Notes under the pieces: generated by a model | The model's database searches: none | What the model saw: only the letters and a program-made list of their open reading frames with translations | What the model was told of the DNA's origin: nothing | Shown: positions 3,001 to 35,879 of the stretch, piece by piece | Layout: each line of letters begins with the position of its first letter | Numbering within the stretch: position 1 is the stretch's first letter | Program-made: the position numbers and the translations under genes | Assembly (NCBI GenBank): GCA_010909165.1 | Contig: MU008151.1 | Location: forward strand, 372,001 to 436,000 | Length of the DNA stretch: 64,000 nt | Origin: Anthoceros angustus | Lineage: Eukaryota > Plantae > Anthocerotophyta | Direction: 5' to 3'

Positions 3001-3982
3001 ACTCCTGAGTACTTACGGTTTCGAATGCGCGCTTCTGGTATACGTCGGACATCTGTGTGTGGGAGTGGTGCGGTTTTCTTAGACTGTGGCTAACGAGGTT
3101 TCTCTGTGAAAAACAGGGTAAGGCAAAACGTGTTTTGGAAGATGACACATACTCCAATGTCAGCACGCTGAAGAAATACCGTACACATGCTTATGCTCCT
3201 AGTGGTCCAAGCTGCTGTGTATGCCAACGGAAACTGAACGAGGATTATGAAAGAAACTCTGATGGGAATGTTGTAAGTAGACGCTTGAGCAGCAAGGACA
3301 AACGCAAAGGAAAGATGCCAGAGGAAGATGGCAGAGAACAGCAAATGGCAAGCTTACCAGTTGGAGTGTTCATATTTGCTTGTGGGCATGCAGTTCATTC
3401 TTCGTGTTTGGACGACACTCTCAGTGGTGAATCGGCATTTATTGGTTGCCCAATTTGCTCTACATCAGTGAGCGACAAAGTGGCTGTCGTTCAACAACAA
3501 ACGGTACAACAACCCAGAACCCTCCAAAATCCAGGAGGGATAGAGACAACGATAGTGGCTAGCGAAGCTAAAACATCTGTTTCTTCAAGGGTGTGTACAG
3601 ACCCTTTCGCTTGCATTTATGTTATTCGTAGGAGAAGCTCTATTGACTGACATTGCTGACTGTTGCAACTCCTGGTGTGCAGTGGGAACTGCTGAATAGT
3701 CTCCAAAGAGGGAAGAGAATCGATGAGCTGGGACCTTCAATACAGCTGAGCCTGGCACCCCCGAAAATAATCGCCCCTTCCCAGAAAGCGAATTCCCGGA
3801 GAATCGGCTCTTCCCGAGCTACAATATCCAGCCGGAAAGCAGGCTCCACTGCGAGGAGTTCACTGAGGCGCGACCTGGGAAAAACTGGAGCTGCGAGACC
3901 TGGTCAGCAGGTGATTCGCGACAAAATTGCGGATACCTTGTCAGCCAAGGTGCAGGTCCCTAGCAAAAGGAGGATCGCATAA
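1..3982 (+). CDS. VPS8: Vacuolar protein sorting 8 homolog (CORVET subunit), multi-exon, 5' end outside the window
   Basis: Exonic peptides include SRTELWP...PSLRAELLHFLL, AQQAHFWQVC, LLCQFNPTSVLSFLERYENYRLEHCLKLCQEY..DAAVFILERVGD, DAIGLCQRNTRQLDPHESQQLWF, YVPLSDIMHKILTDNGGHEFRDFRETILGLLSTYGFE and a C-terminal RING (CCVCQ...CGHAVHSSC...CPIC). They are separated by short GT-AG introns; stop at 3982. Confidence 0.92.
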
Positions 3983-5540
3983 CACCTTGAAGGTACATAC
4001 CTAGTGAAGGGTACCGCGAAACCCGTTCCAAGTCGGCTTCGCAAGAGAGCCGGCCGTAGCCGGGGTGCCTTAACGACGGAACGTGCCAATTAGGAAGTAC
4101 CGACGGTATGAATAGGTTCTGTGAGAAGGACGCCATGGATTCCTGCCAAGATGCTAAGATTTACGTGATAGCCTTAGCAGATCAGGAAACGTGTGATAGG
4201 CACGTCCTTCCCTTATTGTAGTGACCAAAATATGTAAAAATGTGACGGCTTCATCGCCATCAGCAGGTTGAAGGACGTCTTACGTGAGTCCTTGCCTCAT
4301 TTTACAGACTGCTGTCACGGGACCAGACCTTTATCTTGAGCCGGAGCAGTATACGAGAAGAAATTCTGTGTCCCGAGTTGCGCAGCACACTAACTAGAAT
4401 GCTACACTGGTCTTAACCATTCCATGCTCCTCACATGCCTGGCTAGCGTAAGTAGGGTGCGGCCAGGGTCTACCATAATCAACCAACCTGTAATCCCTTC
4501 AATCAAGTGTCAGGTATCGACTTCGGCGACATACTGTTGGTGCATCAAACTGCTTCTGATAGGGTCTTCTCACTTCTCCTCGTTCTACGCATTCCTGTTT
4601 GACAAAGAGAGACGTCTCCAGCTGTTGGTTTCAAGAAGCAAGTCCAGATTGGCGGTCTTGTGGTTGAGTGATTTTTACATCGTTTGTACACCGTCAGGAT
4701 GTATTTTTCATCTTCCCGACCAGGCAAAGCTGGGACAGGGATGTCCCTCACTCAAATCGCGTCTGCAGCTCCTGCCTTCATGTCACAGTGGCAGTAGACA
4801 AAACGGAATAGCAGTTAGGCAGCAGCTAGTGCCAAAGTCCCATCTCCGATATCGAACTGAGAAGATGAAGATTCCCCTGTTGCGTGGAATGTGGACTGGA
4901 TAACGCAGCACAAACATGTGCCTGATAGGTGGTAAGTTTGTATCTCCGATGATGAAAGGACGTCAACTTAGGCAGGTGTGCAACGAGAGGGAAATTTGAA
5001 GAGTCCACTTGAATTAAATCCTGCAGAACCACTGTCTACTTCTTCTCTTAGACTCGGGGAGCAGGAACTACACCAATGCCCACATTTGCTGCTGTTCCAG
5101 CAACATTTCGCATTGACGTTGTATCATTGAACAGTTCAACGAATGACATTCGTGCCCTGCACCTTGGCAATTTACAGAACGCATACAATATGCACAGTTC
5201 CTCCGACGATCATAGCTTGTTGCAGAGAAGCCATTGAGTAATGACTAATACAAACTTGATTTGTGCATCTGTAGATTTTAGGGGTACCAACGCCTTGGGA
5301 AGAACAGCCAACCCGAGCTGGGACAAGCTGCCAAGAGATTTATCAGCTGTAGACGTGGGCTCCGGTGAGATTCTTGTCTTGATCAAGGGATCCATGGCCC
5401 AAGGCGCACGGCCTGGGCTGTGCCAGCTGTGAGGCAAGGTCGCGTAGGAGGAGGTGGCCAGACATATTTAGCCCGAAACATCAAGACATCTTTGGCCCGA
5501 AACATCAAGTGCTCCTCGGCAAATGGAATAATCTGGGAAG

Positions 5541-5680
5541 ATAGGATTTGTGTGGAGGGATTAACCCAATGATCCAAGCAAGCGTGATCCTTCTGCCCAA
5601 GTTGTGACTTATAGGATTTGTGTGGAGGGATTAACCAAATGATCCAAGCAAGCGTGATCCTTCTGCCCAAGTTGTGACTT
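5541..5680. repeat. 70-bp direct tandem duplication (2 copies)
   Basis: ataggatttgtgtggagggattaacc...gttgtgactt starts at 5541 and again at 5611. Confidence 0.95.
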
Positions 5681-6767
5681 AAAGCCAGGAGCTATATATG
5701 TTTGCTCAAGCAGAAAATATCAACCAACTCCTCTTCCTCGCATTGTGTGAGTGGAACCTGTCCTACCATTTGATTGTGGACGCTCCTCGTTACGTCCTAG
5801 CAGCGTGTGTAGTTGTCTCACCCCCACTACCTCCCGTCCACTTGCCCATGAGTTCGTTTGAAAGGAGTGGTTGGTTGATTAGTAGTCTTGTCAGCTAAAT
5901 ACATGTGTGAGCTTTAGTTGCAAGCTAGGTAGTTGTTTTCGCATCACCCCTTCCTCCTTGTGTTCCATGTGGTTGGAGAATAAGAGCGACAAAAAATAAA
6001 TAAGAGCGACGTGGTGCACTTATATCCATGATAAAGTACAGGATATGTATATACTTATATGTAGATAAACATAAGGGATATGTATATGTAGATTAAATAT
6101 ATATTATATTTATATTATTAAATATTATATTTGTATTATTAAATATAATTATAATAATAAGTTTATTTTATATTAAGATATAAATTACTTATTCATTTTA
6201 GCCATCAGCATAACTTCTAGCCCTTATCTTACCCATGCACTCTATCGTAACTTTTATCCCTTGCCCCTAACCAAGTACTCCTATACGTATTCCATAGTAT
6301 TATGTTATACTATATAATATTTTATTATTAATTACATATTATATTAAGGTATAAATTACTTATCAATAGGGCCATCGATGCCGAACGTTAAAATTTAGCT
6401 TAGCATCCATCAATACTCACTACTAGTATAGACCGAGATCAAACCCTAAACTTCTTAGTTCTAAGAAATATGCCTTGACCAATCCACTATTTTAGTTGGA
6501 GCATTAAGATCTCGGGATTTATTTGAAAGAAAAATCTAAACGTAATATTATTGCCTATGTCTAAGTTCATGGGCACGCGTCTTACTTTGCATTCGAAGGA
6601 CAGTTTCAAAAGAGAAGGAGGAAGGGACTTACCCTTTCCCTTCTCTTTTACAAGGGAGAGGAGGAGGGGGAGAGGCAAGGAGGAAAAGGGAGAGAGGGAT
6701 CTGAGGTAGAGAAAGAGGAGGAGCAAGAGGAAGCGGAAGCAGAAGTAGAGGGTGAGAGGGAAAGAAA

Positions 6768-6812: not shown

Positions 6813-7379
6813 GGGGAGAGGGAAAGGGAAAGGGAAAGGAAGAGGGTGGTCCCTCTCAAAATTTCAAAATAATTGCAACAACTAAAGTGTTACATGGTCT
6901 TTTGTTACAGTTTTGCTGGATTGGTACCGAACCTCCTTTCATCTACCTTAACCCTTGTTGCTTTCACACTCGTATTTTATTGGTGCCATTATTGTAATAT
7001 GCATATAGGGCTTTATACATACTTTACATCTACGCTTTCATTACCATATTTTCCTAAGGTAATTTATTCCAATACCTATACACGGTCTTCTACATATTTC
7101 ACTTGTATCTGTTCTACCTTATTTTCTGTTATTTTATATGTTATCCACGTATCATACAATTATATACGTCATCCGTGTAATGTACATATATACAAACCCA
7201 TTTATTCCAAAAAATATGACATATTGATATTTTATTTCACTGCACACAAGCTGGCCCATTGGATCATTCAAAATTGTGATTCCGCAAGCTCGTTCTCTGG
7301 TTCTTTTTCGTTTTTTTCATTGCGAGCACATTCCATGCTGCTCCTCTGCATCCATTTGCCAAGCATCTACACCTAATAG

Positions 7380-10869: not shown

Positions 10870-13656
10870 TTCAAACAGTAGGCAACCACACACACTGAGC
10901 ATTTGCAATCAAGAAAACATCTGCAAGATGAGGCTTGGTTATACTATCTTGAGAAAGAAGGTGCAGAATCGAACCTGTTTCTCAACAACGTTCACAGCAG
11001 AAGTTTCTGTTGAAATGCCTCTTAGCAACCTCGATACACCAGCAGGCAATGACTCTACCACCCCAAAAATTGAACCACTGTCACCTTGGTCAGCTGCAAG
11101 GCCCTCCACCGCATCTCCTAATGGAGGACTTTGATCCTCCAAGTTCAGTAGCCCAGGCAGCAAATTCTTGGTACTTAAAGCACCTGTAGTTGCATGCCCT
11201 GCATTCCGTGTACTATGCTCCAGGCTCTCCACCTCTGGGCGGATTGACTCCCAGCCTGCCTCTCTGCAGCTTACCCCTTCATTGCAAGAGTCAGTTAAAA
11301 TCGCCTGCTTTGGTTCCTGCCCCGGAGCTACAGCATCTCCTCTATTATCTTGAAGTGTCCCTTTGACTCCAGAATGATCACCAATACAGCGATCTTGGCA
11401 AGCTCCACCGTCACCAGATAGCAAGGGCCATTGCGGACGAAGCAGTTCCCGATTTCAACCGGTGATGGGACATTCGTAGGTTTTCAAACCAGCTCTTAAC
11501 AAGTCTTCACAATCCTCTAAGCTGGTGCAGTTTGGGTTCCCAGTTGGTCTGGGCCCTGTTGTTTCAGAGTCTGGTATTCCTACAGTCCCTTGAGTAAAAG
11601 AGGGCAAACTGACATCACCCTCACCTGGAGTTGATTGGCACTGGCGCTCGCTACCTGTTTCAAAGCCTTTGGTCAGTGGTCGGGCATGATTCTTCTTGTA
11701 TCGATGATGGAGCAAGAGAGATTTTGACTTAAAGCTCTGATGACAAATTTCACATGCAAATGCCTGCATGTGATCGAACTCTATGATATGTAACCGCAGC
11801 TTCCGTTCAGTTAGACACTCAGCCCCACAGACGGGGCAGCTGCAACATATCTTTGTCACGTCAACATCTCTGCTAACACCAGCAGCATAATGCTCCTGGA
11901 CAAGCAACTTGTGTCGCCTGTCACTTTCACCAGATCTATTTGAGGCAGCCTTACCAGCCAAAAAATCCATGCTGTGATGCACATTCTGTGTGCACCGACC
12001 TCCAGACCCAACACCAGACGCAGAAGAGACATGCTTAAGGCACCCATCAGTCTCAATGGAAGGGTCTTCTTTCACTTTCCCCAAAGTGTCACACTCCTTC
12101 TGGATCGCCAGTAAGCGTGCTTCATCGAGTATCGAAGAAGGACCACCGGTTCCTTCCTGCTCCATGTGGTCAACAAGAACCTGGCCTCCACGATTTTGAG
12201 GGGCCCTATCCGCAGCAGAAAGTTCCACTGGAATAGTCCTATTTGAAGAAGGCCAAGCCAGAGTGGGCCTCATTCCATCACCATCCACTCCCACACAGAA
12301 ATTCACTCCAGTTTCTTCCTGCCTCTTGGGATCCTCAGGATCAAGATCTTCATTTCCTTCAGGAATGGAATGAAGTGCAGCAGGAGATTCTTTAGGCGAA
12401 GTCTTCTGTAAAGAGGAGAGAGACAGATTAGGCCTGGTTCCATCACCATCTGCTGCCAGAGATAAATCGCTGCCTCTGCTCGATTTAAGATTCAGGTCCT
12501 CCTCAGTGACAGTCACAAGTTGTGCAGCAGCCTCTTTAAACGATCCCCACGTGTTGCCCTGCGGGCTGCACATCCAAGAAACCACACATTAATAATAGAA
12601 TACAAGATATCATAACCTCCTCTCTTCCTTTCCTAGACTGCATTTTCAACAAGAAAAAGATGCAGCACTCTGAAGAACATCACTGCAATTGTGCTTGTAG
12701 TAAGCAGCATACTCTTTGTAATCTCTATACTCAAAATAGTACCGCCCGTGCTTCTGACGCAACCCTACACACACTGTCCATCCAGAAGGGAATCCATTTG
12801 CAGACACGGTCTTCCTTCGCTTGTGATCAGAGGTCCAAGTGCCCCCCATGTTTGTCAAAACCTCGAACAGTCCTGCCTCTGAAGTGTCAGGTCCCTTTCC
12901 CCTCCTCTTGCCAGGGAGGAGCTCTACTTCTTGTTCTCTCTGGAGTTCTGTGTCCTGGTATCCTTGCATTTCCTTCCTGTCGCCTACCTGTTTCATCTTC
13001 TTCCGCTTACGATGTCCTTCTCGACGAATAGGCTCATCTTCCTCCTTTGATGTGCCCACTGCAGTACTCCTCTTCTTCCTGTCTCCGGATAATGGCACTG
13101 TTGCAACCTGCGGATTATCCTGCAGAGGAGGACTCTGGGACCTGGGAAGGCCACCTGCCTGGTCCATTCCATAAGCATCACAGCTTCGACGTGAAGGCCG
13201 CCCACGGCTTCTGCGAGGACTCGATTCAGGAGATCGATCATTCTTTGCCTTGCCACTTCCGCGCCCTCTAGAAGGAGCCTTCTCCTCCAGGAAGCACTGT
13301 TTGTGATTTGCAGCACTGTCATTGAATCCACTGTCCTTCTCTGTATGCACTTCCACCAATGCCTGTGTTCGAGCACGATCCAGATCTTGGCCCGACACAG
13401 CCTCCGCAACCTGAAGCAACTCCTCCGCACTAAACGCATGAAGGTCCACAAAAAACAGTGGTGACAATCCCTTAGGTTTCTCCATATCCTCAAACTCTAC
13501 CACAGTCCTCGGGTCAACTGCACCCGGAACAACCATAGTGCCATCCCCAACTTGCACCACAGCGCCACCCCAAACCCTGCCCACGGCCTCCAATCGGCCA
13601 GCAATCTCATCCTTGACAAACACCTCCTCCTCCTCCAACTCCACCAGCCTCACCAT
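10870..13656 (-). CDS. MBD8-like protein (methyl-CpG-binding domain, AT-hook-like RGRP, C2H2 zinc fingers); 3' end unresolved; in-frame TGA at 11455-11457
   Basis: The N-terminal block FFVDLHAFSAEEL...FNDSAANHKQ resembles the conserved MBD8-family segment. The MBD is split by an intron (FPSGWTVCVGLRQKHGRYYFEYR / SPQGNTWGSFKEAA). Zinc fingers CPVC...H and CEICHQSFKSKSLLLHHRYKKNH follow. The first in-frame ATG is at 13656. Confidence 0.72.
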
Positions 13657-18909: not shown

Positions 18910-20873
18910 CTACTGGCAAGTCTCAGTGAGTAGTCCAAATTGGGCAGCCATCTTGAGAATGGTGGCTTTGACGTCCTCCTCCTTCATCTCACCCTCTTTC
19001 ATCTGCCAAGGCAACATGAGAAGGCCTATGAGCTCCGGGGGCTAACACAAAGCAAGCACCAAGCTTCTAGGTAAACCAGTGGTGAAGCGGTAACTTTACC
19101 TCAGCTATGAATGTGTTCAGGACATTCTTGTTGAAGCAGGTGAGGTTTGCGTTCAGCACATCGAGACCCGAAGCTTCGAGTGTTTGCATAAGTTGCACTA
19201 GCACACCGGGGCCTTGCTTGCAGAATATTCTTAGCTGAAAGGCTCCTACATCAACCCGGGAAATCTCCACCTGCAAAAAGACATCATTCGTCGAGGGGCT
19301 GAAGATAAAACATGCTCAGTCCAGCATGTGGATGGACAGCTGAATCTTGTACTTCACAGATAACTTACTTGGAGCAATGACTGCTGAGGCAGATTGCTGC
19401 CGGCTTGGCTGCCCAAGGAGACCATGCCATCCTCAATTTGAGATATAGCAGAGTCCTCTGTGCCGTCACACACTTTCCCTGCAGGGTAAGGAGCGCAGCT
19501 GCTTTTGATCTTCTGGCTGTCTGCTTCTATTTCTGAGATGTCAGACTGGAGACTCTCAACCTGCTGTTGAAGCTCTCGCACATATTCTATGGCATCCCCC
19601 ACAATCGAAGCTTTATCCATCTGCGCCATTACGGAGACGTAAGTCTTAAGAGAAAAACCTTCGTATCTGAATCACCCGTAAAAAGTAGTTTACGCAATGC
19701 TGGTAATGGCAGACTCACTTTGCTGATTTTGGGCACCAGAGCACGCAAAGCGTACAGGCCATCATTTAGCCGCTTGCGCCGTTTTCTCTCCGAAACCAGA
19801 TTCTTGGATGCTGTTCCAGAGGTATACTGCCTCCTGCGACCTCTGCTGGCTGCCATGACTGTGGGTTTCACATCCATGTCGTCTTGATCACTGCAATCCG
19901 TCCCTGAGTCTCCGGCGGCTAAAGTCTCCTCCGTTTCGGCTACGGCTTGCTGGATGTCACCCGCGACCCCTGAAAGATAGGCATCCTTGGTGAGGAAATC
20001 TCCCTCTTTGGAAGTCTCAAGCTTGGGCGCTATCTTCTGCAGCTCCTTGATGCAGCTGGGAGCGTTGAAACATGGCTTCCCTCTCAGTAAGAGATCGTCG
20101 ACGTCGGATTGGAGTGAGTCGTTTCCCGCGAAAGATTGGGTTCCACTCTGGGACAGGTTTCCCTTGGATTGCCGACTGTGATTGCTCAAGGAGTCAGAGT
20201 AGTCGATGCTACCGTCCCGTGATGCAGGAGAAGACAGATCCTGAAGCAAGGACCTGGTCCAGTACGCACCACCGCTTGGGGCTCCAGGACCAGCACATAT
20301 GGCTCCCAGCGATAGACTAGAGATGCCTGACAAGGGAGAGGAATTTGGAGTGGACATGGAACTCAGTGCAGACATCCAGGGCACCCCCGAGTTGCCTCGG
20401 CTGCCCACTTGCAGGCAATGGGCCAAACTCGGAGACTGCCCCACCCCATCCATAATTCCCTCCGTCTTGCCTACAGCCCCCTGGCCGTCAACCTGCGGCC
20501 TCCCCTCAAACACTTGAGTCTGTAATGCGGTGTGGCCTCCGCGATGTGGGTACTTCCCATGCAGCAACTCCTGCACAGAGCCTGAAGACTGCTCAAAGCC
20601 GTCGGAGCCGGCGAATGTCTCCACCGGGGCTGAATTCAGCAGCCCGGTGACTTGTCCAGAAGCATGATGCGCTGCAGCATGAGCTGGAGTGGTACCGCCA
20701 CCGGTGCTGCAAGGGTCAGTCATCGAATGCAGCTGATTGTAATGACCCAAAGCCTCAATAATCTTGCCACAAGTGGCCGAGATGCTGAGCCTTGCGTCAT
20801 AGCTTGCTGCTCCGTGGTGATCGGGGACCTTGAGCCGATGGTGATTCAGGAGGAAAGGTGAGCGATCATGCAT
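18910..20873 (-). CDS. bHLH transcription factor, subfamily III (AMS/FIT/ICE1-related), with C-terminal ACT-like domain
   Basis: Exons 20873-19719, 19620-19369, 19270-19100 and 19002-18910 all join in phase 0 through GT-AG introns. Peptides: KNLVSERKRRKRLNDGLYALRALVPKISK|MDKASIVGDAIEYVRELQ and FQLRIFCKQGPGVLVQLMQTLEASGLDVLNAN. TAG stop at 18912-18910. Confidence 0.93.
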
Positions 20874-20875
20874 CT

Positions 20876-23783
20876 GTTGGCAGAGACACAAGCGTGCACA
20901 TGGTGTTAGAAGCTACATACGGGTGCACAAAGAGCGGTAATAAAGCGGTTACATCATCAGCAGCATTGTCACATGAAGCAAGCAGGTAAGCCAGCCCGCA
21001 GCTAACCTTACCAACAAATCTGCCTTGTGAAAAGCCGTTCAGGGATCAGTGAAAGGGACAACAAGGACAGGGGACTCGAGGAAGTGAAATTTTAAGCACG
21101 CGGTGGCCAAGCAGCTACTGACTGTCATCCTGTAGTACATACATGCTGCAGCCCAGGCAGAGTGAGAAGACTGTGTACAAACAGCATCCCAGCCAGCGAA
21201 CCGATCCCCTGTGCTGTCCTGACTGTGATGCCATGAGGATCTACAAAAGCTCAAGAAAGGCTGTACAGGCTGCAACATAGTTTACAATAAGGGAAGGTCC
21301 AGGCAGAAGGAAGGAAGTTGCAAAAAGAGCTCACAGTGGCAGACTCTTTCAAGTTCCTTTCACCTCCTGCCGCAGGACTGGTGTGAAAAGTCAGTTACAG
21401 GACCAAAAATGCTTGCAAGCAAGGAGGTGAGGAGTTCGCAAAGTTTCCAAGAGCCAATCCAGCAGCCACAAACCTCTGGGAAATGCCTCTATGAAAACAG
21501 CAAAATCGACACACAACAGAGTCCCAATACGGTACGCAACGTTGGACGGTGTCACCCGTGGTACTCAAATGCTGCATTTGTTGCGCCAGGACAGACAGAA
21601 GCAGCTGAGAAGAAAGGAGACGAACAGACTCGTGTACTGCACCATATAATGGCTGGTAATTGGACGTATTTCCTAAGCAGGAAGAGGAATCTTGGGAGGC
21701 TGGGAGCACTAGCGTAACAAGAGTCCAGAATTGGATTGCAGGACACTGGTTTCGCACATGCGGAGTCAATGCAGGTCAGGAATCTTAAGCCAATTCGACG
21801 GGCCCTGAAACTAGGCACTGCACTGCACTGCACTGCACTGAGAGAGCAGAATGAGAGAGCTAGCAAAGCATGCGTAGCGAGCGGGTCCCCCATTGCAACG
21901 GATTAAACAGACTGAGTGGCGGCCGTTCGCAGCAAAATTTTGCAACCGGGACGCGGCACGGCACGTCAAGATCTCGTCCGCTGGCTTGCCACAGATTTTT
22001 GTGTCACATGGCCACCTCCCAGCGACAAATTTCGGACGCGTACCTGCATTGCGTGCGTCATCTGGCCGAGCGGGGCACGCCGCTGCTGATGCAGATGCTG
22101 ACGCAAAGGTCAAGTCGCTACGCTGCTGCCGCCAATGGAGCTCCACGCCTGCGCCAATCCCACCCGCAGCCTCATCGCCGCAACCACGTGGTGCCTGACA
22201 TCGCCGGACCGCCTCCTCGCTCCTCGCCGCGGCGCCGGCCGCTGATTCTCGCCTACGCGCTTCATGGTAACCGATCTACATGCTTCTCCGATTGCCGCAT
22301 TCCCGCCTGCCGCGAACTCGGAGCGCAGGGTTGGCAGAGACACAAGCGTGCACATGGTGTTAGAAGCTACATACGGGTGCACAAAGAGCGGTAATAAAGC
22401 GGTTACATCATCAGCAGCATTGTCACATGAAGCAAGCAGGTAAGCCAGCCCGCAGCTAACCTTACCAACAAATCTGCCTTGTGAAAAGCCGTTCAGGGAT
22501 CAGTGAAAGGGACAACAAGGACAGGGGACTCGAGGAAGTGAAATTTTAAGCACGCGGTGGCCAAGCAGCTACTGACTGTCATCCTGTAGTACATACATGC
22601 TGCAGCCCAGGCAGAGTGAGAAGACTGTGTACAAACAGCATCCCAGCCAGCGAACCGATCCCCTGTGCTGTCCTGACTGTGATGCCATGAGGATCTACAA
22701 AAGCTCAAGAAAGGCTGTACAGGCTGCAACATAGTTTACAATAAGGGAAGGTCCAGGCAGAAGGAAGGAAGTTGCAAAAAGAGCTCACAGTGGCAGACTC
22801 TTTCAAGTTCCTTTCACCTCCTGCCGCAGGACTGGTGTGAAAAGTCAGTTACAGGACCAAAAATGCTTGCAAGCAAGGAGGTGAGGAGTTCGCAAAGTTT
22901 CCAAGAGCCAATCCAGCAGCCACAAACCTCTGGGAAATGCCTCTATGAAAACAGCAAAATCGACACACAACAGAGTCCCAATACGGTACGCAACGTTGGA
23001 CGGTGTCACCCGTGGTACTCAAATGCTGCATTTGTTGCGCCAGGACAGACAGAAGCAGCTGAGAAGAAAGGAGACGAACAGACTCGTGTACTGCACCATA
23101 TAATGGCTGGTAATTGGACGTATTTCCTAAGCAGGAAGAGGAATCTTGGGAGGCTGGGAGCACTAGCGTAACAAGAGTCCAGAATTGGATTGCAGGACAC
23201 TGGTTTCGCACATGCGGAGTCAATGCAGGTCAGGAATCTTAAGCCAATTCGACGGGCCCTGAAACTAGGCACTGCACTGCACTGCACTGCACTGAGAGAG
23301 CAGAATGAGAGAGCTAGCAAAGCATGCGTAGCGAGCGGGTCCCCCATTGCAACGGATTAAACAGACTGAGTGGCGGCCGTTCGCAGCAAAATTTTGCAAC
23401 CGGGACGCGGCACGGCACGTCAAGATCTCGTCCGCTGGCTTGCCACAGATTTTTGTGTCACATGGCCACCTCCCAGCGACAAATTTCGGACGCGTACCTG
23501 CATTGCGTGCGTCATCTGGCCGAGCGGGGCACGCCGCTGCTGATGCAGATGCTGACGCAAAGGTCAAGTCGCTACGCTGCTGCCGCCAATGGAGCTCCAC
23601 GCCTGCGCCAATCCCACCCGCAGCCTCATCGCCGCAACCACGTGGTGCCTGACATCGCCGGACCGCCTCCTCGCTCCTCGCCGCGGCGCCGGCCGCTGAT
23701 TCTCGCCTACGCGCTTCATGGTAACCGATCTACATGCTTCTCCGATTGCCGCATTCCCGCCTGCCGCGAACTCGGAGCGCAGG
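20876..23783. repeat. 1454-bp direct tandem duplication (20876-22329, 22330-23783) of the bHLH 5' region
   Basis: gttggcagagacacaagcg starts at 20876 and at 22330. ORF-track translations repeat with an offset of 1454. Confidence 0.97.
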
Positions 23784-25616: not shown

Positions 25617-27150
25617 TCAAGGACTCCAGTCCCCGAACTCGTCCACAAACATGTCGTCCACCATGAACATCTCATCAAATACATCACCATCTGAGTCCAG
25701 CTGCGACGCCATGCACCATTCCTCCAAGTCACTGAGCCAGATCTCGTCATAGCGATCATCGTAGCTTTCCCAAGGATCGTCCGCATCATCATCATCATCC
25801 AGATCATCCTCGTCATATACATCGCGATGGGTCTTGAAGAACCAGGTCTTGAGCTTCTTCACCTTCGCTTGTAGTTCCTCGTCCATGATCAGCTTGCCGC
25901 AATTGCGCACATCCAGGTACTGCAAGTCCTTGCAGGACTCCAGTATTGCCATCAATCCAATGTTCGAGAATTGTCCATATTTCAGCTCAAGGTGCTGCAG
26001 CTTGGACATGTTCTGTGCGATTGCAAGTGCCTCACTCTCGGGCAAAGATGACACCTGACTTCCCCGCATGCGCCTCCTCAGATCAACCAAATTGGCAGCC
26101 TTCTTGCCGATGTTCTCGAGCGCCACCTCCGACAGCACCTGACAGTGACTGATGTTCAGTTGCATGAGAGCTGGGAACTTGACTTCCTCGCCAAAGAAAC
26201 AGCAATCCGAAATGGGACTGTTCGGAATGAAGAGCTTCCTCAGATGTGCGCATCTGCACAGACGAACCACGCAAGTCATGACCAGAAGGCAAGATCCATC
26301 CCTACTCTGCCAGAAAGAGGCATCGCACATGCAATACCTCGGTTCTTAACCGCAGAATGCAACATGCAGACATATTTTTACCTTTGCCATCACAAGGCAA
26401 GCAATCCGAAACGGCTAACACAGATTTAACCAGAAAAGATCGGAGACCGAGCAAGGCCGAACATCCGAGCCTAATTAGGCTTACGACACACACAAGACTC
26501 GAAAGCGGACAGACAGCGCGTGAAAGAAGACCTTGTCGCAACATATCGAATGGAGTCGTCAGACCCGACGTTTGTGACGATGAGCTCCTGAAGACCGCCG
26601 CAGCTCCGATCAACCACCAGCCTCACCATGCGATCCACAGCACTCGTCTTATCCTTGTCCGTCTTGCTCCATTCCCTCTTACTCCACTCCTTCTTACTCC
26701 AGCTGGAAAGGTCCACGACCTAATGACGCCATGAAGCAAGGTGAAACGAGGGCAGGACTGCCAGACACAGGCCGGGAATCGCAGATCCCGCATTCCAAGA
26801 AAGTCATGCCAAGAATGACGAATCACCTGCCAGCACGAGGGATCCAGAGCAGCTCTCCTCCAAGACTTGCACACCAGTGGCACCACATTCATGAGCTCCT
26901 CGAACGACAGTCTGCTGAAGATGGCTGCCAGAGCTTCCGGCAGCATGTCTGCCCAGGCGCCGAAATCTTGAATCGGGGCTTCCTCATGCTTCCCATCGTC
27001 CGACGATCTTGCAGATCCCGACTCCGCTCCGTGTGAAGGGTCATCCGAATTTCTGTCTGTTCCGCTTCCCACAGGCGGCACCAGCTGCTCACCAGCCATG
27101 CCATCGGCCATGTCAGGCCACCAAACCCTCCTCGAGGCTCTCTCGGCCAT
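25617..27150 (-). CDS. F-box/LRR protein of FBW2/SKIP1/SKIP19 type with an acidic tail
   Basis: F-box WADMLPEALAAIFSRLSFEELMNVVPLVCKSWRRAALDPSCWQ, then VDRMVRLVVDRSCGGLQEL, LRR-like segments ALAIAQNMSKLQHLEL and GLMAILESCKDLQYLDVRNC, and a D/E-rich C-terminus. The start may alternatively be at 27111. Confidence 0.9.
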
Positions 27151-27429
27151 GAGCCACCGGCATAACTGCTTTAACACACAGCAACCCCGCAAGGTGACCG
27201 CACCATGCAGTATTGTACAGTGTCATTGTTACGCCCACCCAATTTAGGTCTGTATTGTATTGTTACCGTAGGAGGCTACGGTTTTGGGCGCCCCTTTGCC
27301 GAATCGTTTAGTTTTCTAAACGATGAAATTTCAACACCTAAAATATCTTCCATAATTTCAACAAGGTATTGTATCTTTCTTTAATTCGGCACTTTATAAA
27401 TAGTATTATTGTAAACACATCACTCTTAG

Positions 27430-27989
27430 ATGCCAGCTCCTGGTCTGCTCCTCTTCATATGCATCCTCCAATGCCAGCTCAGATTCCCTGGTCTGCTGCT
27501 CTTCATATGCATCCTCCAATGCTAGCTCAAACTCCCTGGTTTGCTGCTCTTCATGTGCATCCTCTGATGCTAGCTCAGACTCCCTGGTCTGCCACTCTTC
27601 GTATGCATCTAGAGGCAATGTTAGTATATATAGACTCCTCGGTCTACTACTCATTTCTTGCATCCTCCGATGTGGGTACGGACTCCGTGGCTTGCCATTC
27701 TTCTCATGTCTTTCTCACAAGGTTGTCTCTTGCTAACAATTTTGATGTGGCTTCTTCCCATGTGATATCATCTTACACTATAAGGAAATTGGTGAAGGCA
27801 CACCAAGATGCGAGTAAGGAACGGTACAAAAACAGCTTTTGTATTCCGTCTACCATTGCGTACTTCTTGTCAGATGCCTCCAGTGCAATAAACAACTCAT
27901 GTAAAGGTATTGATGTGCTCTCTCAATTCCTCCCTACTTGTATACTTCAACACCTGGATTCGGGTGAATAAGTGCAGCACTTCCCCTCT
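27430..27989 (-). mobile_element. Ty1/Copia gag, C-terminal half (degenerate), followed by a 48-bp coding minisatellite
   Basis: Across frameshifts the minus strand reads EVLHLFTRIQVLKYTSREELREHINTF.ELFIALEAS...LYRSLLASWCAFTNFL...DITWEEATSKLLARD, resembling UBN2-type Copia gag. About four 48-bp units encode LEDAYEEQQTRESELA. Confidence 0.75.
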
Positions 27990-28090
27990 AACAAGGTCTC
28001 CTTAGGGCTAGTGACACACTCCACTTTCAGGAGACGGGCCAGGGGCTAGAAGAGATCCCAAAGTTCATAGAGAAGGTCAAGGACAGTGCT

Positions 28091-31020
28091 GTGGCCACGG
28101 ATGACGATAGGCTAGCGATGACGAGGGCTGAGGCTGGGCGAGATGTTGCGAGAGAGGCAATTGCGGGAAAGAGAGTATGGGAGTCCACGTTAAAGCTGTC
28201 CATCAACAGTTGTAGACCTCCAGAACAACTTTGTCAGTTTGGCAAGGTACGTAAGCTAGACCTGGCTTGGGTGGAGGCTTTGATGCAAAAGATGAAGCAT
28301 TCCACGTGGGTGGCCGGTGTGCTGCCCATGATTGTCATTGTAGACCCGGCCCAGTGTCCCAACAAGAACTTCTTTGACATGGATAAGGTGGATCGGGGGG
28401 TGTACAAATTTTATGTATTGGAGGGAATCATTCCTTCCAGGCCAGATCTAGACTAGCCGACTTGTATCCATTGGTTCAAATGCAGGTGGATGGATGCATA
28501 TGTTCTTCTTGGCCTCACAAATGAGGAGATGAGGTTAGTTGCCGATCACAACACCATTGCGGATGCCGGAAGACTTTTACTTTCATCGACCGTGTGAGGT
28601 ACATCAGGCGAGATGAAGGCCGGGCTAGGCGATGGGTGAAGTGTGACTTAGACTGAAGTTGGAGATATATGCCGGTGGCGGGGTTCCTAAGTGGGATGCG
28701 ACCAAGCATGGACCTAAGGTCTATCACGCCTCGTGGACAACCTAGGACCTTTGGATTATTGTGTTGCGAAGGTTGATGATGAGGTGTGGAAATGCGTGGA
28801 TGAAATCTTTGAGAAGTGGAGGCAAGCAGTTGCTGGCGGTGGAAGCTCGGGCTCTCACAAAGCAGTCGAGGCCGCGAATTCAAGGAAGACAACAGTTAGA
28901 GCAAACTTGGTCATTGACACAAAGGAGCTTAGTATACCGGTGAGGGTATGGAAGTGTTTCGGGGCATCGAGCGATCTGCGGTGGGAACAACAACTTGAAG
29001 ACAACATGCATGAAAGTCCTGGAGAATTGACATTGAAACAAATGTTCGTGTGGGTGGACAAGGCCAAAAACTCAACCTCATCCATGTGACATCGCCAAGC
29101 ATTTGCACGTGAGACATTTGAAGAGGTTCGAAGCGATATCCCGATTCGCATGGTGAATCAAATTAGTAACTTCCACGCCTTCAAAAATCTGGGTCCTCGA
29201 TGAACACTTAGCTATACCCAAATCGAGTTTCTCTCTTGTCTTCTTGTCCTTATAAGTCATGGAAAGTGGAGGCATTCACACCGTACATTCGAAGAGAACG
29301 TCCTTGCATTTGGTGGGATGTGTCTTTCATGTCTGCGTGCCAACACTTGCCTTGAGTGGGGTGCCCTACGAGAACTTCAAGGAGCACATATTCAAGGCCG
29401 AGCTTGGAAGCGGATGGAGGAGTCGCGTGCCTTGAAATCGACCACACGAGGATAAGCGATGACAATCGTGAGCGACTCCAAGCCGGAAAAACCCGGCAAG
29501 GTCGGGATCGTGGAACATAGTGAACATGGCCCGGTTTGTAGAGCCCGACCGTATGCTTTGTTGTTGTTAGACCTCCCGAGGCTTGGATCTAGATCCCCAA
29601 TCACGAGTATGACACAAGATTTACCAAGGCGAGTTTGAAGGGGTCATCATGCGGTTCAAAGGCATCACCACATCCGGTATTTCGTATTGTGGTCTTCCAT
29701 TCTCCGGATGACACATCTATGGTGAGAGAAGTCTTGATGGAAGCGTGCGGTCTTTGGCGACATGTTCGGCATAAAACCAATGTGACATTGTCGAGGACAG
29801 TGCGATCGAGGACTTTTCACTTGCGCGAGCTTGGAAGCGGATGGAGGAGTCGCAACGTGCCTTGAAATCGACCACACGAGGATAAGTGATGACAATCGTG
29901 AGCGACTCCAAGCCGGAAAAACCCGGCAAGGTCGGGATCGTGGAACATAGTGAACATGGCCCGGTTTGTAGAGCCCGACCGTATGCTTTGTTGTTGTTAG
30001 ACCTCCCGAGGCTTGGATCTAGATCCCCAATCACGAGTATGACACAAGATTTACCAAGGCGAGTTTGAAGGGGTCATCATGCGGTTCAAAGGCATCACCA
30101 CATCCGGTATTTCGTATTGTGGTCTTCCATTCTCCGGATGACACATCTATGGTGAGAGAAGTCTTGATGGAAGCGTGCGGTCTTTGGCGACATGTTCGGC
30201 ATAAAACCAATGTGACATTGTCGAGGACAATGCGATCGAGGACTTTTCACTTGCGCAGGAGCTTGGAAGCGGATGGAGGAGTCGCAACGTGCCTTGAAAT
30301 CGACCACACGAGGATAAGCGATGACAATCGTGAGCGACTCCAAGCCGGAAAAACCCGGCAAGGTCGGGATCGTGGAACATAGTGAACATGGCCCGGTTTG
30401 TAGAGCCCGACCGTATGCTTTGTTGTTGTTAGACCTCCCGAGGCTTGGATCTAGATCCCCAATCACGAGTATGACACAAGATTTACCAAGGCGAGTTTGA
30501 AGGGTCATCATGCGGTTCAAAGGCATCACCACATCCGGTATTTCGTATTGTGGTCTTCCATTCTCCGGATGACACATCTATGGTGAGAGAAGTCTTGATG
30601 GAAGCGTGCGGTCTTTGGCGACATGTTCGGCATAAAACCAATGTGACATTGTCGAGGACAATGCGATGGGACTTTTCACTTGCGCAGGAGCTTGGATAAG
30701 GATTGTGTGCCTCAACCGTTTGTGCTCGAGAACCGACGCAACTTGGCGGTGGAGTGACAACTTTGTTTGCGAGCGGCGGTGGAACTAAAATTGTGTTACA
30801 ACACCGCGGATGATCGGGTTGTTTCCCCTATCGAAGCCCCTAAGACTCTTGAAGAGGTTGATTGTATATCTGAGGGAGATTGGGTCTTTGCCGGTGCGAT
30901 CGGGATCGGGTATGATAGCATTGTTGATTATGCCGTAATGTCATTTGATGTGGATCCCAGTGCGCTCAATTCATGGACCTTGAATCAATTCCATGGACGG
31001 TGGCCGACGGAAGAGGAGGA
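28091..31020 (+). pseudogene. ParB/sulfiredoxin-like domain fused to a beta-class N4C/N6A DNA methyltransferase (PF01555-like), frameshifted and internally triplicated
   Basis: ParB-like part: KVRKLDLAWVEALMQKMK...PMIVIVD...YVLEG(NH)SFQAR (28421) and LGLTNEEMRLVA.HN..FTFIDRVRYIR. MTase part: PYALLLLDLP/GL (29570, the DPPY position, interrupted by a frameshift), IVVFHS, HKTN, KPLRLLKRLI (30834), GDWVF (30875), GSG (30903), SFDVDP. Confidence 0.72.
29400..30695. repeat. Three tandem copies of an approximately 430-bp unit, differing by small indels
   Basis: gagcttggaagcggatggaggagtcgc starts at 29400, 29827 and 30259; a partial gagcttgga occurs at 30688. Confidence 0.93.
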
Positions 31021-32656
31021 GGTGGGCGAGGAGCTATGGAGGCGGAAAGGCGTTCAATAAGGAGCCCATGGTGAACAACATGGTGGTGCCGGGGTTCATA
31101 TGTGTCGTTGAAGCGAGACCAACGAGGAAGCCGAGACCAAGGGTCATATGGCATGTGGTGAAGCAGCAGCGACAACTCAATGGTCCTTGGGGATGCGGGC
31201 GGCAAGTGAAGGAGGCGAAGAGCACCCTCCTCGGGTGTGCTTGGCGGCCGGATGGTGGGGATGTAGGATTGGAAAACTTTGCTTCACGGATCGAGGTGTG
31301 TCGTGCGGACGGTGGATAGGCTACGTGTTTGTTTCGAGGATTACGGTAGGAGGACCGGTGTGGTCTTAAGCGGTAGGTGGTATCTGCACTGGTAGAACGT
31401 GCATGCAAGGCTATGAACACAACAAACACATCGGCAAGGTCCCCGGAGACCTAGACAACGAACACGGTCTTTGGTGGAGCACGCAAGCTAGGAAGCATGG
31501 GAGTGGTGGCGATTCGAGAATGTGTTCGGTGATTGTGCCGGGTATTTGATGAGCGAGATCATGGGCGTCTGTCGCATCGGCAAGGTATGGATTTCCACGA
31601 AACAACGGACCGATTTCAAAGAAGCGCGTCGTCCATTCATACAGCGGATCAATACAATCGCCAAAGCTGTTCCTAATCTCGCTAGGAAGACTATGTATGT
31701 TGTAAACCCACGAGATAAAGCGACGGTGTCGAAGATGACAATGGATGTCATGTGACAATCCAACTTGAAACACGATGTTCAACTTTCACAGATAGCACTG
31801 CTCGCTTATGCCGTAATGTCATTTGATGTGGATCCCAGTGCGCTCAATTCATGGACCTTCGAATCAATTCCATGGACACCGACGGAAGAGGAGGAGGTGG
31901 GCGAGGAGCCCGCTATGGAGGCGGAAAGACGCTCAATAAGGAGCCCATGGTGAACAACATGGTGCCCGGTTCATATGTGTCGTTGAAGCGAGACCAACGA
32001 GGAAGCCCGAGACCAAGGGTCATATGGCATGGTGAAGCAACCGCAGCGACAACTCAATGGTCCTTGGGGATGCGGGCGGCAAGTGAAGGAGGCGAAGAGC
32101 ACCCTCCTCGGGTGTGCTTGATGATGGTGGGGATGTAGGATTGGAAAACTTTGCTTCAGATCGAGGTGTGTCGTGGATATGGATAGGCTACGTGTTTGTT
32201 TCGAGGATTACGGTAGGAGGAACCGGTGTGGTCTTAAGCACCGGACATGGTAGCCGCACTGGTAGAACGTGCATGCAAGGCTATGAACACAACAAACACA
32301 TCGGCAAGGTCCCCGGAGCGACTCTAGACAACGAACACGGTCTTTGGTGGAGCACGCAAGCTAGGAAGCATGGGAGTGGTGGCGATTCGGAGAATGTGTT
32401 CGGTGATTGTGCCGGGTATTTGATGAGCGAGATCATGGGCGTCTGTGCACAATCGCAAGGTATGGATTTCACGAAACAACGGACCGATTTCAAAGAAGCG
32501 CGTGGTGCCGGGTATTTGATGAGCGAGATCAATACAATCGCCAAATCGTTTCCTAATCTCTCGCTAGGAAGACTATGTTGTAAACCCACGAGATAAAACA
32601 ATGTAAGATGACAATGGATGTCATGTGACAATCCAACTTGAAACACGATGTTCAAT
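30929..32656. repeat. Two tandem copies of an approximately 870-bp unit with many 1-3-bp indels
   Basis: tatgccgtaatgtcatttgatgtggatccc starts at 30929 and 31807; both copies end in gaaacacgatgttcaa. Confidence 0.92.
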
Positions 32657-33470
32657 CGCTTTCATAGCCGCACTAACACCGCCTCGGTACACACATGTAG
32701 CAATATGACTTTCTCCAATTTTATCCTTGACCACGGTAAGTACACTGGACATGTCGGTGCTCCTTTGCCCTCCACACCATTCACCGCTCCAACCCCAGTG
32801 GTGGAATCCGGTGTTGATCAACACGTTACGATGTCGCGAGTTTGCCGCCTCAACCGAAATTCCTTAAGGACCAAGCAATGAAGCGGGCGGGATCACTCCA
32901 GCGTGCTTGAAAGGAACTGCCCATGTTGTGATTGCCACCGGTGCGTCAACTTCCAATTTCCATCGCCCATGTGGAATTCTCGTTTGATGGTCGGTACAGG
33001 TGAGGTCTCCATCGCATGCAAATATTCGGCGTGGCAAGCCACTTCCAAACGATTCGCAGGGGTCGCGGCTCGGTGTCTGGAACATGAGCGGTAGGCGTCC
33101 GAAATCTTCCTCCACTCCGCGACATTGGGCGGGAGATGCAAGGTTTATGCAGGCGTCCGGTGCCACCACGACCCTCCCACTAATGTAGAGGGTGACCATG
33201 ACGGTGGACACCAACTCAACACATGTGGACTTTCCATTGCGCGTTTGCATTTTGTTGTCCATACACGATTTCAAATCTGCGTTTATAGGCAATGTACCCC
33301 GCTGGTTAGCCAAACTAATATGAGATGAGAACATACAAATACGGTAAAACAGATCCCTCTATGATTTGCTCCTATGTTCAGGGGGGTTTTTTTTTTAATG
33401 AAATCAGGAAAACATGGTTTTGGATGGCTTTTGTATACCTTTCGATCCTGTGTACACCCTTCCAACTAGT
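31000..33470 (-). pseudogene. Possible CACTA/EnSpm Tnp2-like transposase remnant (heavily frameshifted)
   Basis: Minus-strand fragments occur in the order expected for Tnp2: FPDF (about 33410), L.LA..GV, VMVTLY..LPP, EFRLR, KGAPTCPV (about 32760), KVI.YMC.RR, LFR.IPY, H.L.H, and an FPP..HLL..GP-like string (about 31020). Each match is short. Confidence 0.45.
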
Positions 33471-33507
33471 GACCAGGAGCCGTCACCAGTCCCAAGGAGA
33501 CCTTGTT

Positions 33508-33860
33508 CTCTTTCCTTTAGCCATACTTCGTCTTGAGCAGCTTCTACACCTTTTCCATCCCTTGATCTGGTTCTACGATAGCCAGCTTGATAGCCTTGGA
33601 GAGACTCATGTATATGAGAGCCGTTGCACAATGGTCTCTCTGATCTAATCTCTCCCCTTTGTCACATTGCGTGGGTTTCTTCTTCGTGCCTTCCGCAATA
33701 GCAAACCCGCCCTCTACCATTAGAACGACCTTCATGGACGTTCTGCATAATAGAAATCCTGTTCTATCGAACGTCGACACTTGAAGTGCCGCTGTGGATA
33801 TTAATGAGCTTAGTGCCATCCCAACTAGCTCCTGGTACTCCGACACCAACTTCATCTCTT
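33508..33860 (-). mobile_element. Ty1/Copia gag, N-terminal half
   Basis: TFDRTGFLLCRTSMKVVLMVEGGFAIAEGTKKKP...DQRDHCATALIYMSLSKAIKLAIVE...LLKTKYG fits the Copia gag N-terminal pattern. Confidence 0.8.
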
Positions 33861-33896
33861 CTATCCTCTAAGTCTGGCTATGAGCGAATGGTTGCC

Positions 33897-34859: not shown

Positions 34860-35450
34860 CAACTCAGGAGTGACATACGCTGCTGGTCAAGCCTCCGTCC
34901 ACTAGGAGGCTCGCTCCCGTCAAGGAGGAGCCGTCATTTGCGAGAAACAAGGCAGCCTTGGCCATCTCCATGGCCTCCCCAAATCTGCCCATTGGAATGT
35001 GCTCCAGCCTCCTCTGTTTCTTCTCTTCTGTGTCCAGAAAATCCATGATCAGCTTCGTTCGGATGGGCCCAGGGCACAGTGCGTTCACGTGGATTTCTTC
35101 TTTTCCATGGATGACCACCAGCTCCCAGGTGAGGGCAACAACTGCAACTTTGCTGGCAGTGGAGGCGAGTTGCAGAGATAACTCCCTTCGCGTTCACAGC
35201 TAAAGTGCGCTCAATTACATCGTCCGCCGTGCTCACAGCATCCCCGTCCTGGCTGTCCATGATGCCGGCATTGTTGAAGAGGGTGTGGAGGGAGCCGAAC
35301 ATCTTCTCCGCCTGTCGACCATGGCGGCCACGTCCGCCGGCTTGGACACATTCCCGGTGACGGCATACCTCCTGCCCCCCGAATTCCTTCACTGCATCCA
35401 CAGTCCTGGCAGCAGCCGCGATGTTCACGTCCGACACCACCACCTCATAC
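34860..35450 (-). pseudogene. Short-chain dehydrogenase/reductase pseudogene (FabG-like family ending in GGLTAAYVTPE)
   Basis: Peptides VVVSDVN, LFNNAGIMDSQDGDAVST, VNAKGV, VNALCPGPIRT, EEKKQRRLEHIPMGRFGEA, LLVDGGLT. It has frameshifts, an internal deletion after NAKGV, YxxxK read as STASK, and no Rossmann N-terminal exon was found. Confidence 0.85.
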
Positions 35451-35879
35451 CTGCAATTCTCAACCGAGGGATTATGAGTAGGCTGAGACGTAGTCCCTTC
35501 AGGAGGGTGGGCCTCAAAGGCGTGCAGCCGAGGGCTGCTGACACAATGGCATCTGTAAGCTCTCTTGCTATTGGTGATGGAACATGGTGACATATCAGGA
35601 ATCGATTTGTCACTGCCCATGGGTATTTTTGCAAGGACCACTCTTCCAGCAACGGCCATACCCGTCACCTGGTGCGGTCCTGCGGAAGAATGCAGAACTT
35701 GCTGACGAACAGAAACAGCGCAAGAAGGTCCCAGATCATGGGCCTACTACCACACACGATATAACAACCGAAAATATTTCAATATGGCCTCACTGCCACA
35801 CTGGGTTCAAGGAGGAAACCCCCTGAGAGATGGACAAGCACAGTGTAATGTCCATGGACAACAACAGCAGCTTCTGCAG

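Follow-up and report, generated by a model that had tools for sequence, protein, structure and literature searches.

Sola1 transposons are described as long elements with terminal inverted repeats (TIRs), a 4-bp target-site duplication (TSD) and a preference for AWWT or AWDT targets in the passages of PMC3845634 and PMC4455052 that cite Bao et al. 2009. Sola1-1_Ec32 of Ectocarpus, a 21.5-kb element, carries a ParB-like and DNA-methyltransferase gene on the strand opposite its transposase (Genome Biol 2025, PMC12477816), and the supplement of that paper gives it AACCG-CGGTT termini, a TSD of 4 and Sola1-1_PPa as its best blastp match (PMC12477816). Our subject is a 5518-bp element at positions 27990-33507 of a 64-kb stretch of Anthoceros angustus DNA (contig MU008151.1, positions 372,001 to 436,000, forward strand; hereafter the window), which resembles Sola1-1_Ec32 in having TIRs, an apparent 4-bp TSD and termini that start with AAC (AACAAGG compared to AACCG). 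A further likeness lies in the passenger gene, which in a relative of the window element again stands opposite the transposase, the passenger of Sola1-1_Ec32 combining an N4C/N6A-type methyltransferase with a ParB-like domain. Sola1-1_PPa we take, from its Repbase name, to be a moss element. There are also clear differences, since Sola1-1_Ec32 is autonomous, has imperfect TIRs of 282 bp and resides in a brown alga, whereas the window element is 5.5 kb long, lies in a plant-like nuclear genome, has TIRs of 26 nt, lacks a transposase and holds an internally duplicated passenger that has become a pseudogene. We put the probability at roughly 70% that the window element descends by internal deletion from a cut-and-paste transposon with two genes, most probably one of the Sola1 type, and that it is now dead and non-autonomous.

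The ends of the element are well defined. The left TIR (27990..28015, plus strand) begins with 5'-AACAAGGTCTCC and reads AACAAGGTCTCCTTAGGGCTAGTGAC in full, and the right TIR (33482..33507, minus strand) closes with GGAGACCTTGTT-3', the termini of the element being AACAAGG...CCTTGTT. The two 26-nt arms are complementary at 23/26 positions (88%) and all three differences are A/G transitions. They form the longest inverted pair between 27500 and 34000, and a degenerate 26-mer covering both arms has just two sites in the window and none in 100 shuffles. The same 4-mer, CTCT, stands directly outside the left arm (27986..27989) and the right arm (33508..33511), and we calculate the chance of such an identity at 1/256. 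These arms and flanks bear out the sequence-only reading of this stretch, which had proposed a TIR insertion with AACAAGG termini, CTCT flanks and A/G transitions as the only differences between the arms. The alternative, that no mobile element is present and a chance inverted repeat happens to bracket a segmental insertion or an assembly join within a gag sequence, could draw on the fact that a single copy is visible in the window. We give it close to no credence, as by our own calculation only about 3e-4 inverted pairs of such quality are expected in 6.5 kb, the shuffles yielded none, the flanks hold a direct repeat, one gag appears to continue across the element, and an independent contig has this terminus at the corresponding position.

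That contig was reached through the cargo of the element. The frame at 27992-28453 (154 residues) served as the query of an exhaustive HMMER search, which returned four proteins. Three of them, P0001 (E=2.9e-28), P0002 (E=5.8e-15) and P0004 (E=9.3e-04), all come from one public sequencing run. The fourth, P0003 (E=2.1e-06, in seven matched stretches), is a fibronectin-repeat protein of 3148 residues and was taken as unrelated. P0002 is located on a public contig of 16.2 kb, L002, and positions 28049-31079 (plus strand) of the window are collinear with L002 4046-6268 over six successive open reading frames (ORFs; tblastx, summed E=1.6e-48; also seen by tblastn). On L002 the passenger gene (3593-6616, plus strand) is arranged head-to-head with a gene resembling a transposase (251-1666, minus strand), which the start of the contig truncates, and both L002 and a second relative, L004, hold only the N-terminal part of the transposase. 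Other searches added little. Word-index protein searches with the window piece and with the methylase ORF of L002 returned nothing or the query itself, while the same kind of search with the L002 transposase ORF gave one paralogue of 145 aa besides the query. Two metagenome scans, one by protein alignment and one with a 24-nt TIR pattern, had no matches, and tblastn of P0001 against phages gave only noise.

The nature of the passenger is best seen on L002. The 3' end of the gene there holds an S-adenosylmethionine (AdoMet)-binding motif (..GDWVLDDGSGPGS..), the ORF matches the Pfam family N6_N4_Mtase (PF01555) with E=2e-5 and 25.1 bits, just under the cut-off of 26.7, and its best sequence matches in the PDB are N4-cytosine and other amino-methyltransferases (E=0.004-0.007). 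For the window copy the link to methyltransferases runs only through its homology to L002. Both loci carry an LDLPR motif (window 29567-29581, 29997-30011 and 30429-30443; L002 5560-5574), which may sit where beta-class amino-methyltransferases have their catalytic DPPY. If this alignment holds, the family may lack methylating activity altogether.

A second line of evidence comes from the terminus shared by the two loci. About 275-300 nt past the passenger stop, L002 reads ...GTTTCCGGTCGCAAGGAGACCTTGTT, which corresponds to the right TIR in the window. L002 6890-6915 agrees with the right TIR at 22/26 positions, including an exact outer 14-mer AAGGAGACCTTGTT, and with the left TIR at 19/26. 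With respect to the gene, this terminus points the same way in both loci. The similarity stops exactly at ...CCTTGTT, after which the next bases are TTAA on L002 and CTCT in the window. By our own calculation an exact 14-mer is expected about 1e-4 times in 14 kb. The L002 element is clearly diverged from that of the window, with about 44% protein identity, and because a diverged and independent element ends in the same sequence, these termini are the ends of a family and chance is ruled out. L002 also has a direct sub-repeat, GGAGACC(A/T)TGT, at 6877-6887 and 6904-6914, about 27 nt apart, of which the window ends hold loose versions only. This sub-repeat may be a candidate transposase-binding motif.

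The passenger gene in the window is incomplete from its beginning. Its remnant starts about 33 nt after the left TIR, at roughly residue 150 in L002 numbering, so that the 5' end and the promoter of the gene are missing. The first part (28049..28632, plus strand) is a frameshifted remnant of the N-terminal domain, ParB-like by the literature, which is matched by P0001 and P0002 (phmmer, with the E-values given above) and by tblastn of P0001 residues 19-215, and a GGNHS..AR.RL motif stands at 28420-28434 in a shifted frame. The middle region of the pseudogene follows at 28656..29176 (plus strand; tblastn of the L002 ORF 4578-5285, residues 41-201, E=4e-16). The C-terminal remnant with the AdoMet-binding motif I lies at 30779..31079 (plus strand), collinear by tblastx with L002 5947-6268, and the counterpart of motif I itself (..EGDWVFAGAIGIG.., 30887-30904) is degenerate.

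Two tandem duplications have enlarged what was left. The first half of the methyltransferase-like part is present as a tandem triplication of 3.0 x 430 bp (29400..30696, plus strand; Tandem Repeats Finder and self-blastn), whose units are 98-99% identical and differ by a few transitions only. Each unit carries the LDLPR and FHSPDD motifs and repeats the stretch that matches L002 5551-5748, and the homology to the L002 ORF 5203-5961 accordingly appears three times in the window. The second duplication, 2 x ~877 bp at 30914..32667 (plus strand), covers the 3' end of the gene and the sequence downstream of it. Its units are 89.7% identical over 907 columns by self-blastn, and when aligned show 801 matches, 49 mismatches (25 transitions and 24 transversions) and 55 gap columns. 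The two duplications thus differ in age, the 877-bp one being the older. Between it and the right TIR is a unique subterminal region (32668..33481) with no recognisable coding content, where the longest frames have no Pfam match and similarity to other loci is confined to the very end.

No ORF of more than 170 codons exists within the element, and ten stop-free pieces of it, the motif I remnant included, had no match in Pfam. These pieces were searched separately. The tandem duplications together with the many stops mean that the passenger gene is dead in the window copy. Similarity to a transposase is absent from the whole window, and self-blastn showed no other part of the window to be like the element. 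It is therefore a transposase-less deletion derivative with a pseudogene, a point that the sequence-only reading had overlooked.

These features would fit together as follows. In full-length relatives, the transposase gene would be accompanied by a passenger on the other strand, in which a ParB-like domain is joined to a beta-class amino-DNA-methyltransferase. An internal deletion that reached from the left TIR to about codon 150 of the passenger may have removed the transposase, the intergenic region shared by the two genes and the start of the passenger. Left over are both TIRs of 26 nt and a pseudogene of the passenger that has no promoter, is full of stops and frameshifts and would have gained the two tandem duplications later. 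We infer that a transposase supplied in trans, recognising the AACAAGGTCTCC termini, moved the element, and that its insertion into a Copia gag fragment by a staggered cut could have left the short duplication CTCT, most likely of 4 bp. A putative role of the passenger protein in binding or methylating its own element has been proposed in the literature, and it is one that the window copy cannot perform.

The assignment to the Sola1 type is probable and draws on the cargo gene, the terminus shared with L002, the apparent 4-bp TSD and the 5'-AAC end. The transposase of the relatives points in the same direction. Compared to the printed Sola1-1_Ec32 transposase, the L002 and L004 ORFs have in common the ungapped pattern YF..[LI]W...F...K[IL].....F..C..C...K, and the same block is preceded by [LM]PN and K.E[IL]F..Y and followed by a ..D...Q.....P block.

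Several observations weigh against this assignment, and they concern the genes, the target and the length of the TSD. The agreement with the Sola1-1_Ec32 transposase was seen by eye only, and L002 breaks off at the contig start before any catalytic (DDD) domain. The ParB-like N-terminal domain was not detected by Pfam or by sequence search of the PDB, searching the PDB with a profile of the ParB-like alignment gave noise only, and the AlphaFold model of P0001, built from an alignment of four sequences, reached a predicted local distance difference test (pLDDT) score of 45.6. As neither the searches nor the model gave confirmation, the ParB-like label is taken from the literature on genes of this kind. 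Passengers with ParB-like and methyltransferase domains are moreover found in red-algal Plavaka and Mutator elements (bioRxiv 10.1101/2025.02.11.637652), so that this cargo alone does not fix the superfamily. With regard to the target, AWWT is called a hallmark of Sola1 in a passage of PMC3845634 that cites Bao 2009, and CTCT in the window lies outside both AWWT and AWDT, while TTAA beside the L002 end likewise departs from AWWT (1-2 sites in all). The preference is not universal in Sola1, however, because the targets of Ectocarpus Sola1 are only "biased towards ending in A" (PMC12477816).

The element could also belong to an undescribed DNA transposon superfamily whose transposase is only superficially Sola1-like. 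The TSD sequence outside AWWT would be consistent with this, and so would the result that the L002 and L004 transposase ORFs match no Pfam family and that the nearest clusters to the transposase piece in an Atlas feature search are unnamed eukaryotic proteins. The blank in Pfam is, however, what one would expect, given that Sola transposases matched no Pfam domain as of 2017 (PMC5751038). Sola1-1_Ec32 is moreover matched in design, in the apparent TSD length, in the 5'-AAC terminus and by the N-terminal transposase motifs. We therefore see only a slim chance for a new superfamily. The Atlas search also listed DUF7869 for the transposase piece (0.81), which we set aside as too weak a match; we found no mention of DUF7869 in the literature.

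The host sequence bears on the length of the TSD. On the minus strand the element interrupts a degenerate Copia-type gag fragment, whose upstream part (33512..33867) contains two in-frame stops and an open frame at 33547-33867 with a weak match to the Pfam family Retrotran_gag_2 (profile 1-58, E=0.0017, 18.3 bits against a cut-off of 27). The downstream continuation (27700..27985, minus strand) has stops and a further frameshift near 27900 and is gag-like by eye only, its 30-aa piece having no match in Pfam. Both flanks appear to read as minus-strand Copia-type gag, in line with the earlier placement of the insertion in the middle of such a gene. The 64-kb window has no long terminal repeat, pol or second gag copy, which leaves a short and decayed piece of gag as the host. 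In an empty site built by script, from which the element and one CTCT had been removed, the upstream and downstream frames are one nucleotide out of phase, and the rejoined gag is one base short as the sequence-only reading had noted.

This phase difference speaks for another reading, in which the window element would be a non-autonomous transposon with the same cargo from a superfamily that makes 3-bp TSDs (CMC/EnSpm, Plavaka-like, or another), with one end 1 nt longer and the fourth identical base due to chance. The gag frames stay in phase if 3 nt are removed and not if 4 are, and since CTCT is (CT)2, a TSD of TCT or CTC fits the flanks equally well with one end shifted by 1 nt. The element is also like CACTA/EnSpm elements, Plavaka included, in being a large TIR element with a chromatin- or DNA-modifying accessory gene that can be read with a 3-bp TSD, and the red-algal Plavaka and Mutator passengers mentioned above bear on this reading as well. 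Against it, frameshifts are not confined to the junction, since the gag holds at least one other near 27900, and the junction itself falls within short runs of A, G and C that are prone to indels. Also against it, the conserved terminus ends exactly at ...CCTTGTT in the window and on L002 and the bases beyond it differ. Unlike CACTA/EnSpm elements, the window element has no CACTA termini, and the relatives show no signature of a CACTA-type transposase; the gene layout of L002 and the N-terminal motifs of its transposase resemble the published Sola1 element instead, and neither the L002 nor the L004 ORF matches Transposase_21/24. In Plavaka, the ParB-like and methylase domains are in two different proteins accompanied by SET and 2OG oxygenase partners, unlike the one-gene design proposed here. 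On balance we consider the 3-bp reading unlikely and a TSD of 4 bp, from this single copy, the most likely. In a (CT)2 context a single copy leaves the TSD length ambiguous, and this length should not serve on its own for classification.

Other superfamilies were considered and rejected. CACTA is excluded by the AACAAGG...CCTTGTT termini, and with no CACTA transposase found either, the earlier judgement that this is not a CACTA element holds. The CACTA/CACCA pentamers that had been pointed out at the inner end of each TIR are present, 18-22 nt inside the element ends only, and they carry no weight for classification. The piggyBac and Kolobok superfamilies, with their TTAA target duplication, are excluded by the CTCT flanks. 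hAT, Mutator and KDZ are superfamilies with longer TSDs and were rejected on their termini or on TSD length. The element is then neither CACTA nor, probably, a new superfamily. It had been left unclassified and proposed as perhaps a new family or subfamily, and of this the second part may stand, as it could be a new family at the sequence level within a published kind, while the first does not, since cargo gene, L002 terminus, apparent 4-bp TSD and 5'-AAC end all point to the Sola1 design.

The surroundings of the element contain some further features. A 48-bp tandem repeat (27439-27609; 3.6 copies, 88% matches) follows closely downstream of gag and gives a repeated peptide in the ORFs of both strands. 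Adjoining the gag fragment are F-box-like frames (..LSFEELMNVVPLVCKSWRR..) followed by leucine-rich repeats, recognised by eye (25620-27222, minus strand). Farther along on the same side is a tandem duplication of about 1454 bp (~20870-23730), in which, for example, the minus-strand frames 21042-21281 and 21398-21775 are equal to 22496-22735 and 22852-23229. Upstream of gag, at 34867-35743 (minus strand), are frames that by eye resemble a short-chain dehydrogenase/reductase (..LFNNAGI.., ..NALCPGPI..). On L002, an intact and intronless ORF for an Ulp1-type protease (11918-12964, minus strand; Peptidase_C48, E=6.6e-45) is found 5 kb beyond the end of the element; it may belong to the host or be carried by another transposon.

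A single dead copy that holds only a passenger matters little in itself. What it adds, to a small sample of eukaryotic transposons with a prokaryote-type DNA-modifying gene, a kind recognised only recently, is a clean insertion with both ends and the host context. The 14-26-nt terminus can moreover serve as a probe for finding an autonomous partner in the Anthoceros angustus genome. One could go further and suppose that the AACAAGG elements are a land-plant Sola1 lineage in which a ParB-like/methyltransferase-like gene is the standing partner of the transposase, perhaps with an altered catalytic motif (LDLPR compared to DPPY), and this we regard as decidedly unlikely at present. If it were true, the passenger protein may bind the DNA of its own element and not methylate it. 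The retention of the passenger in derivatives that have lost their transposase would then hint at a role in cis in the propagation or the silencing of the element.

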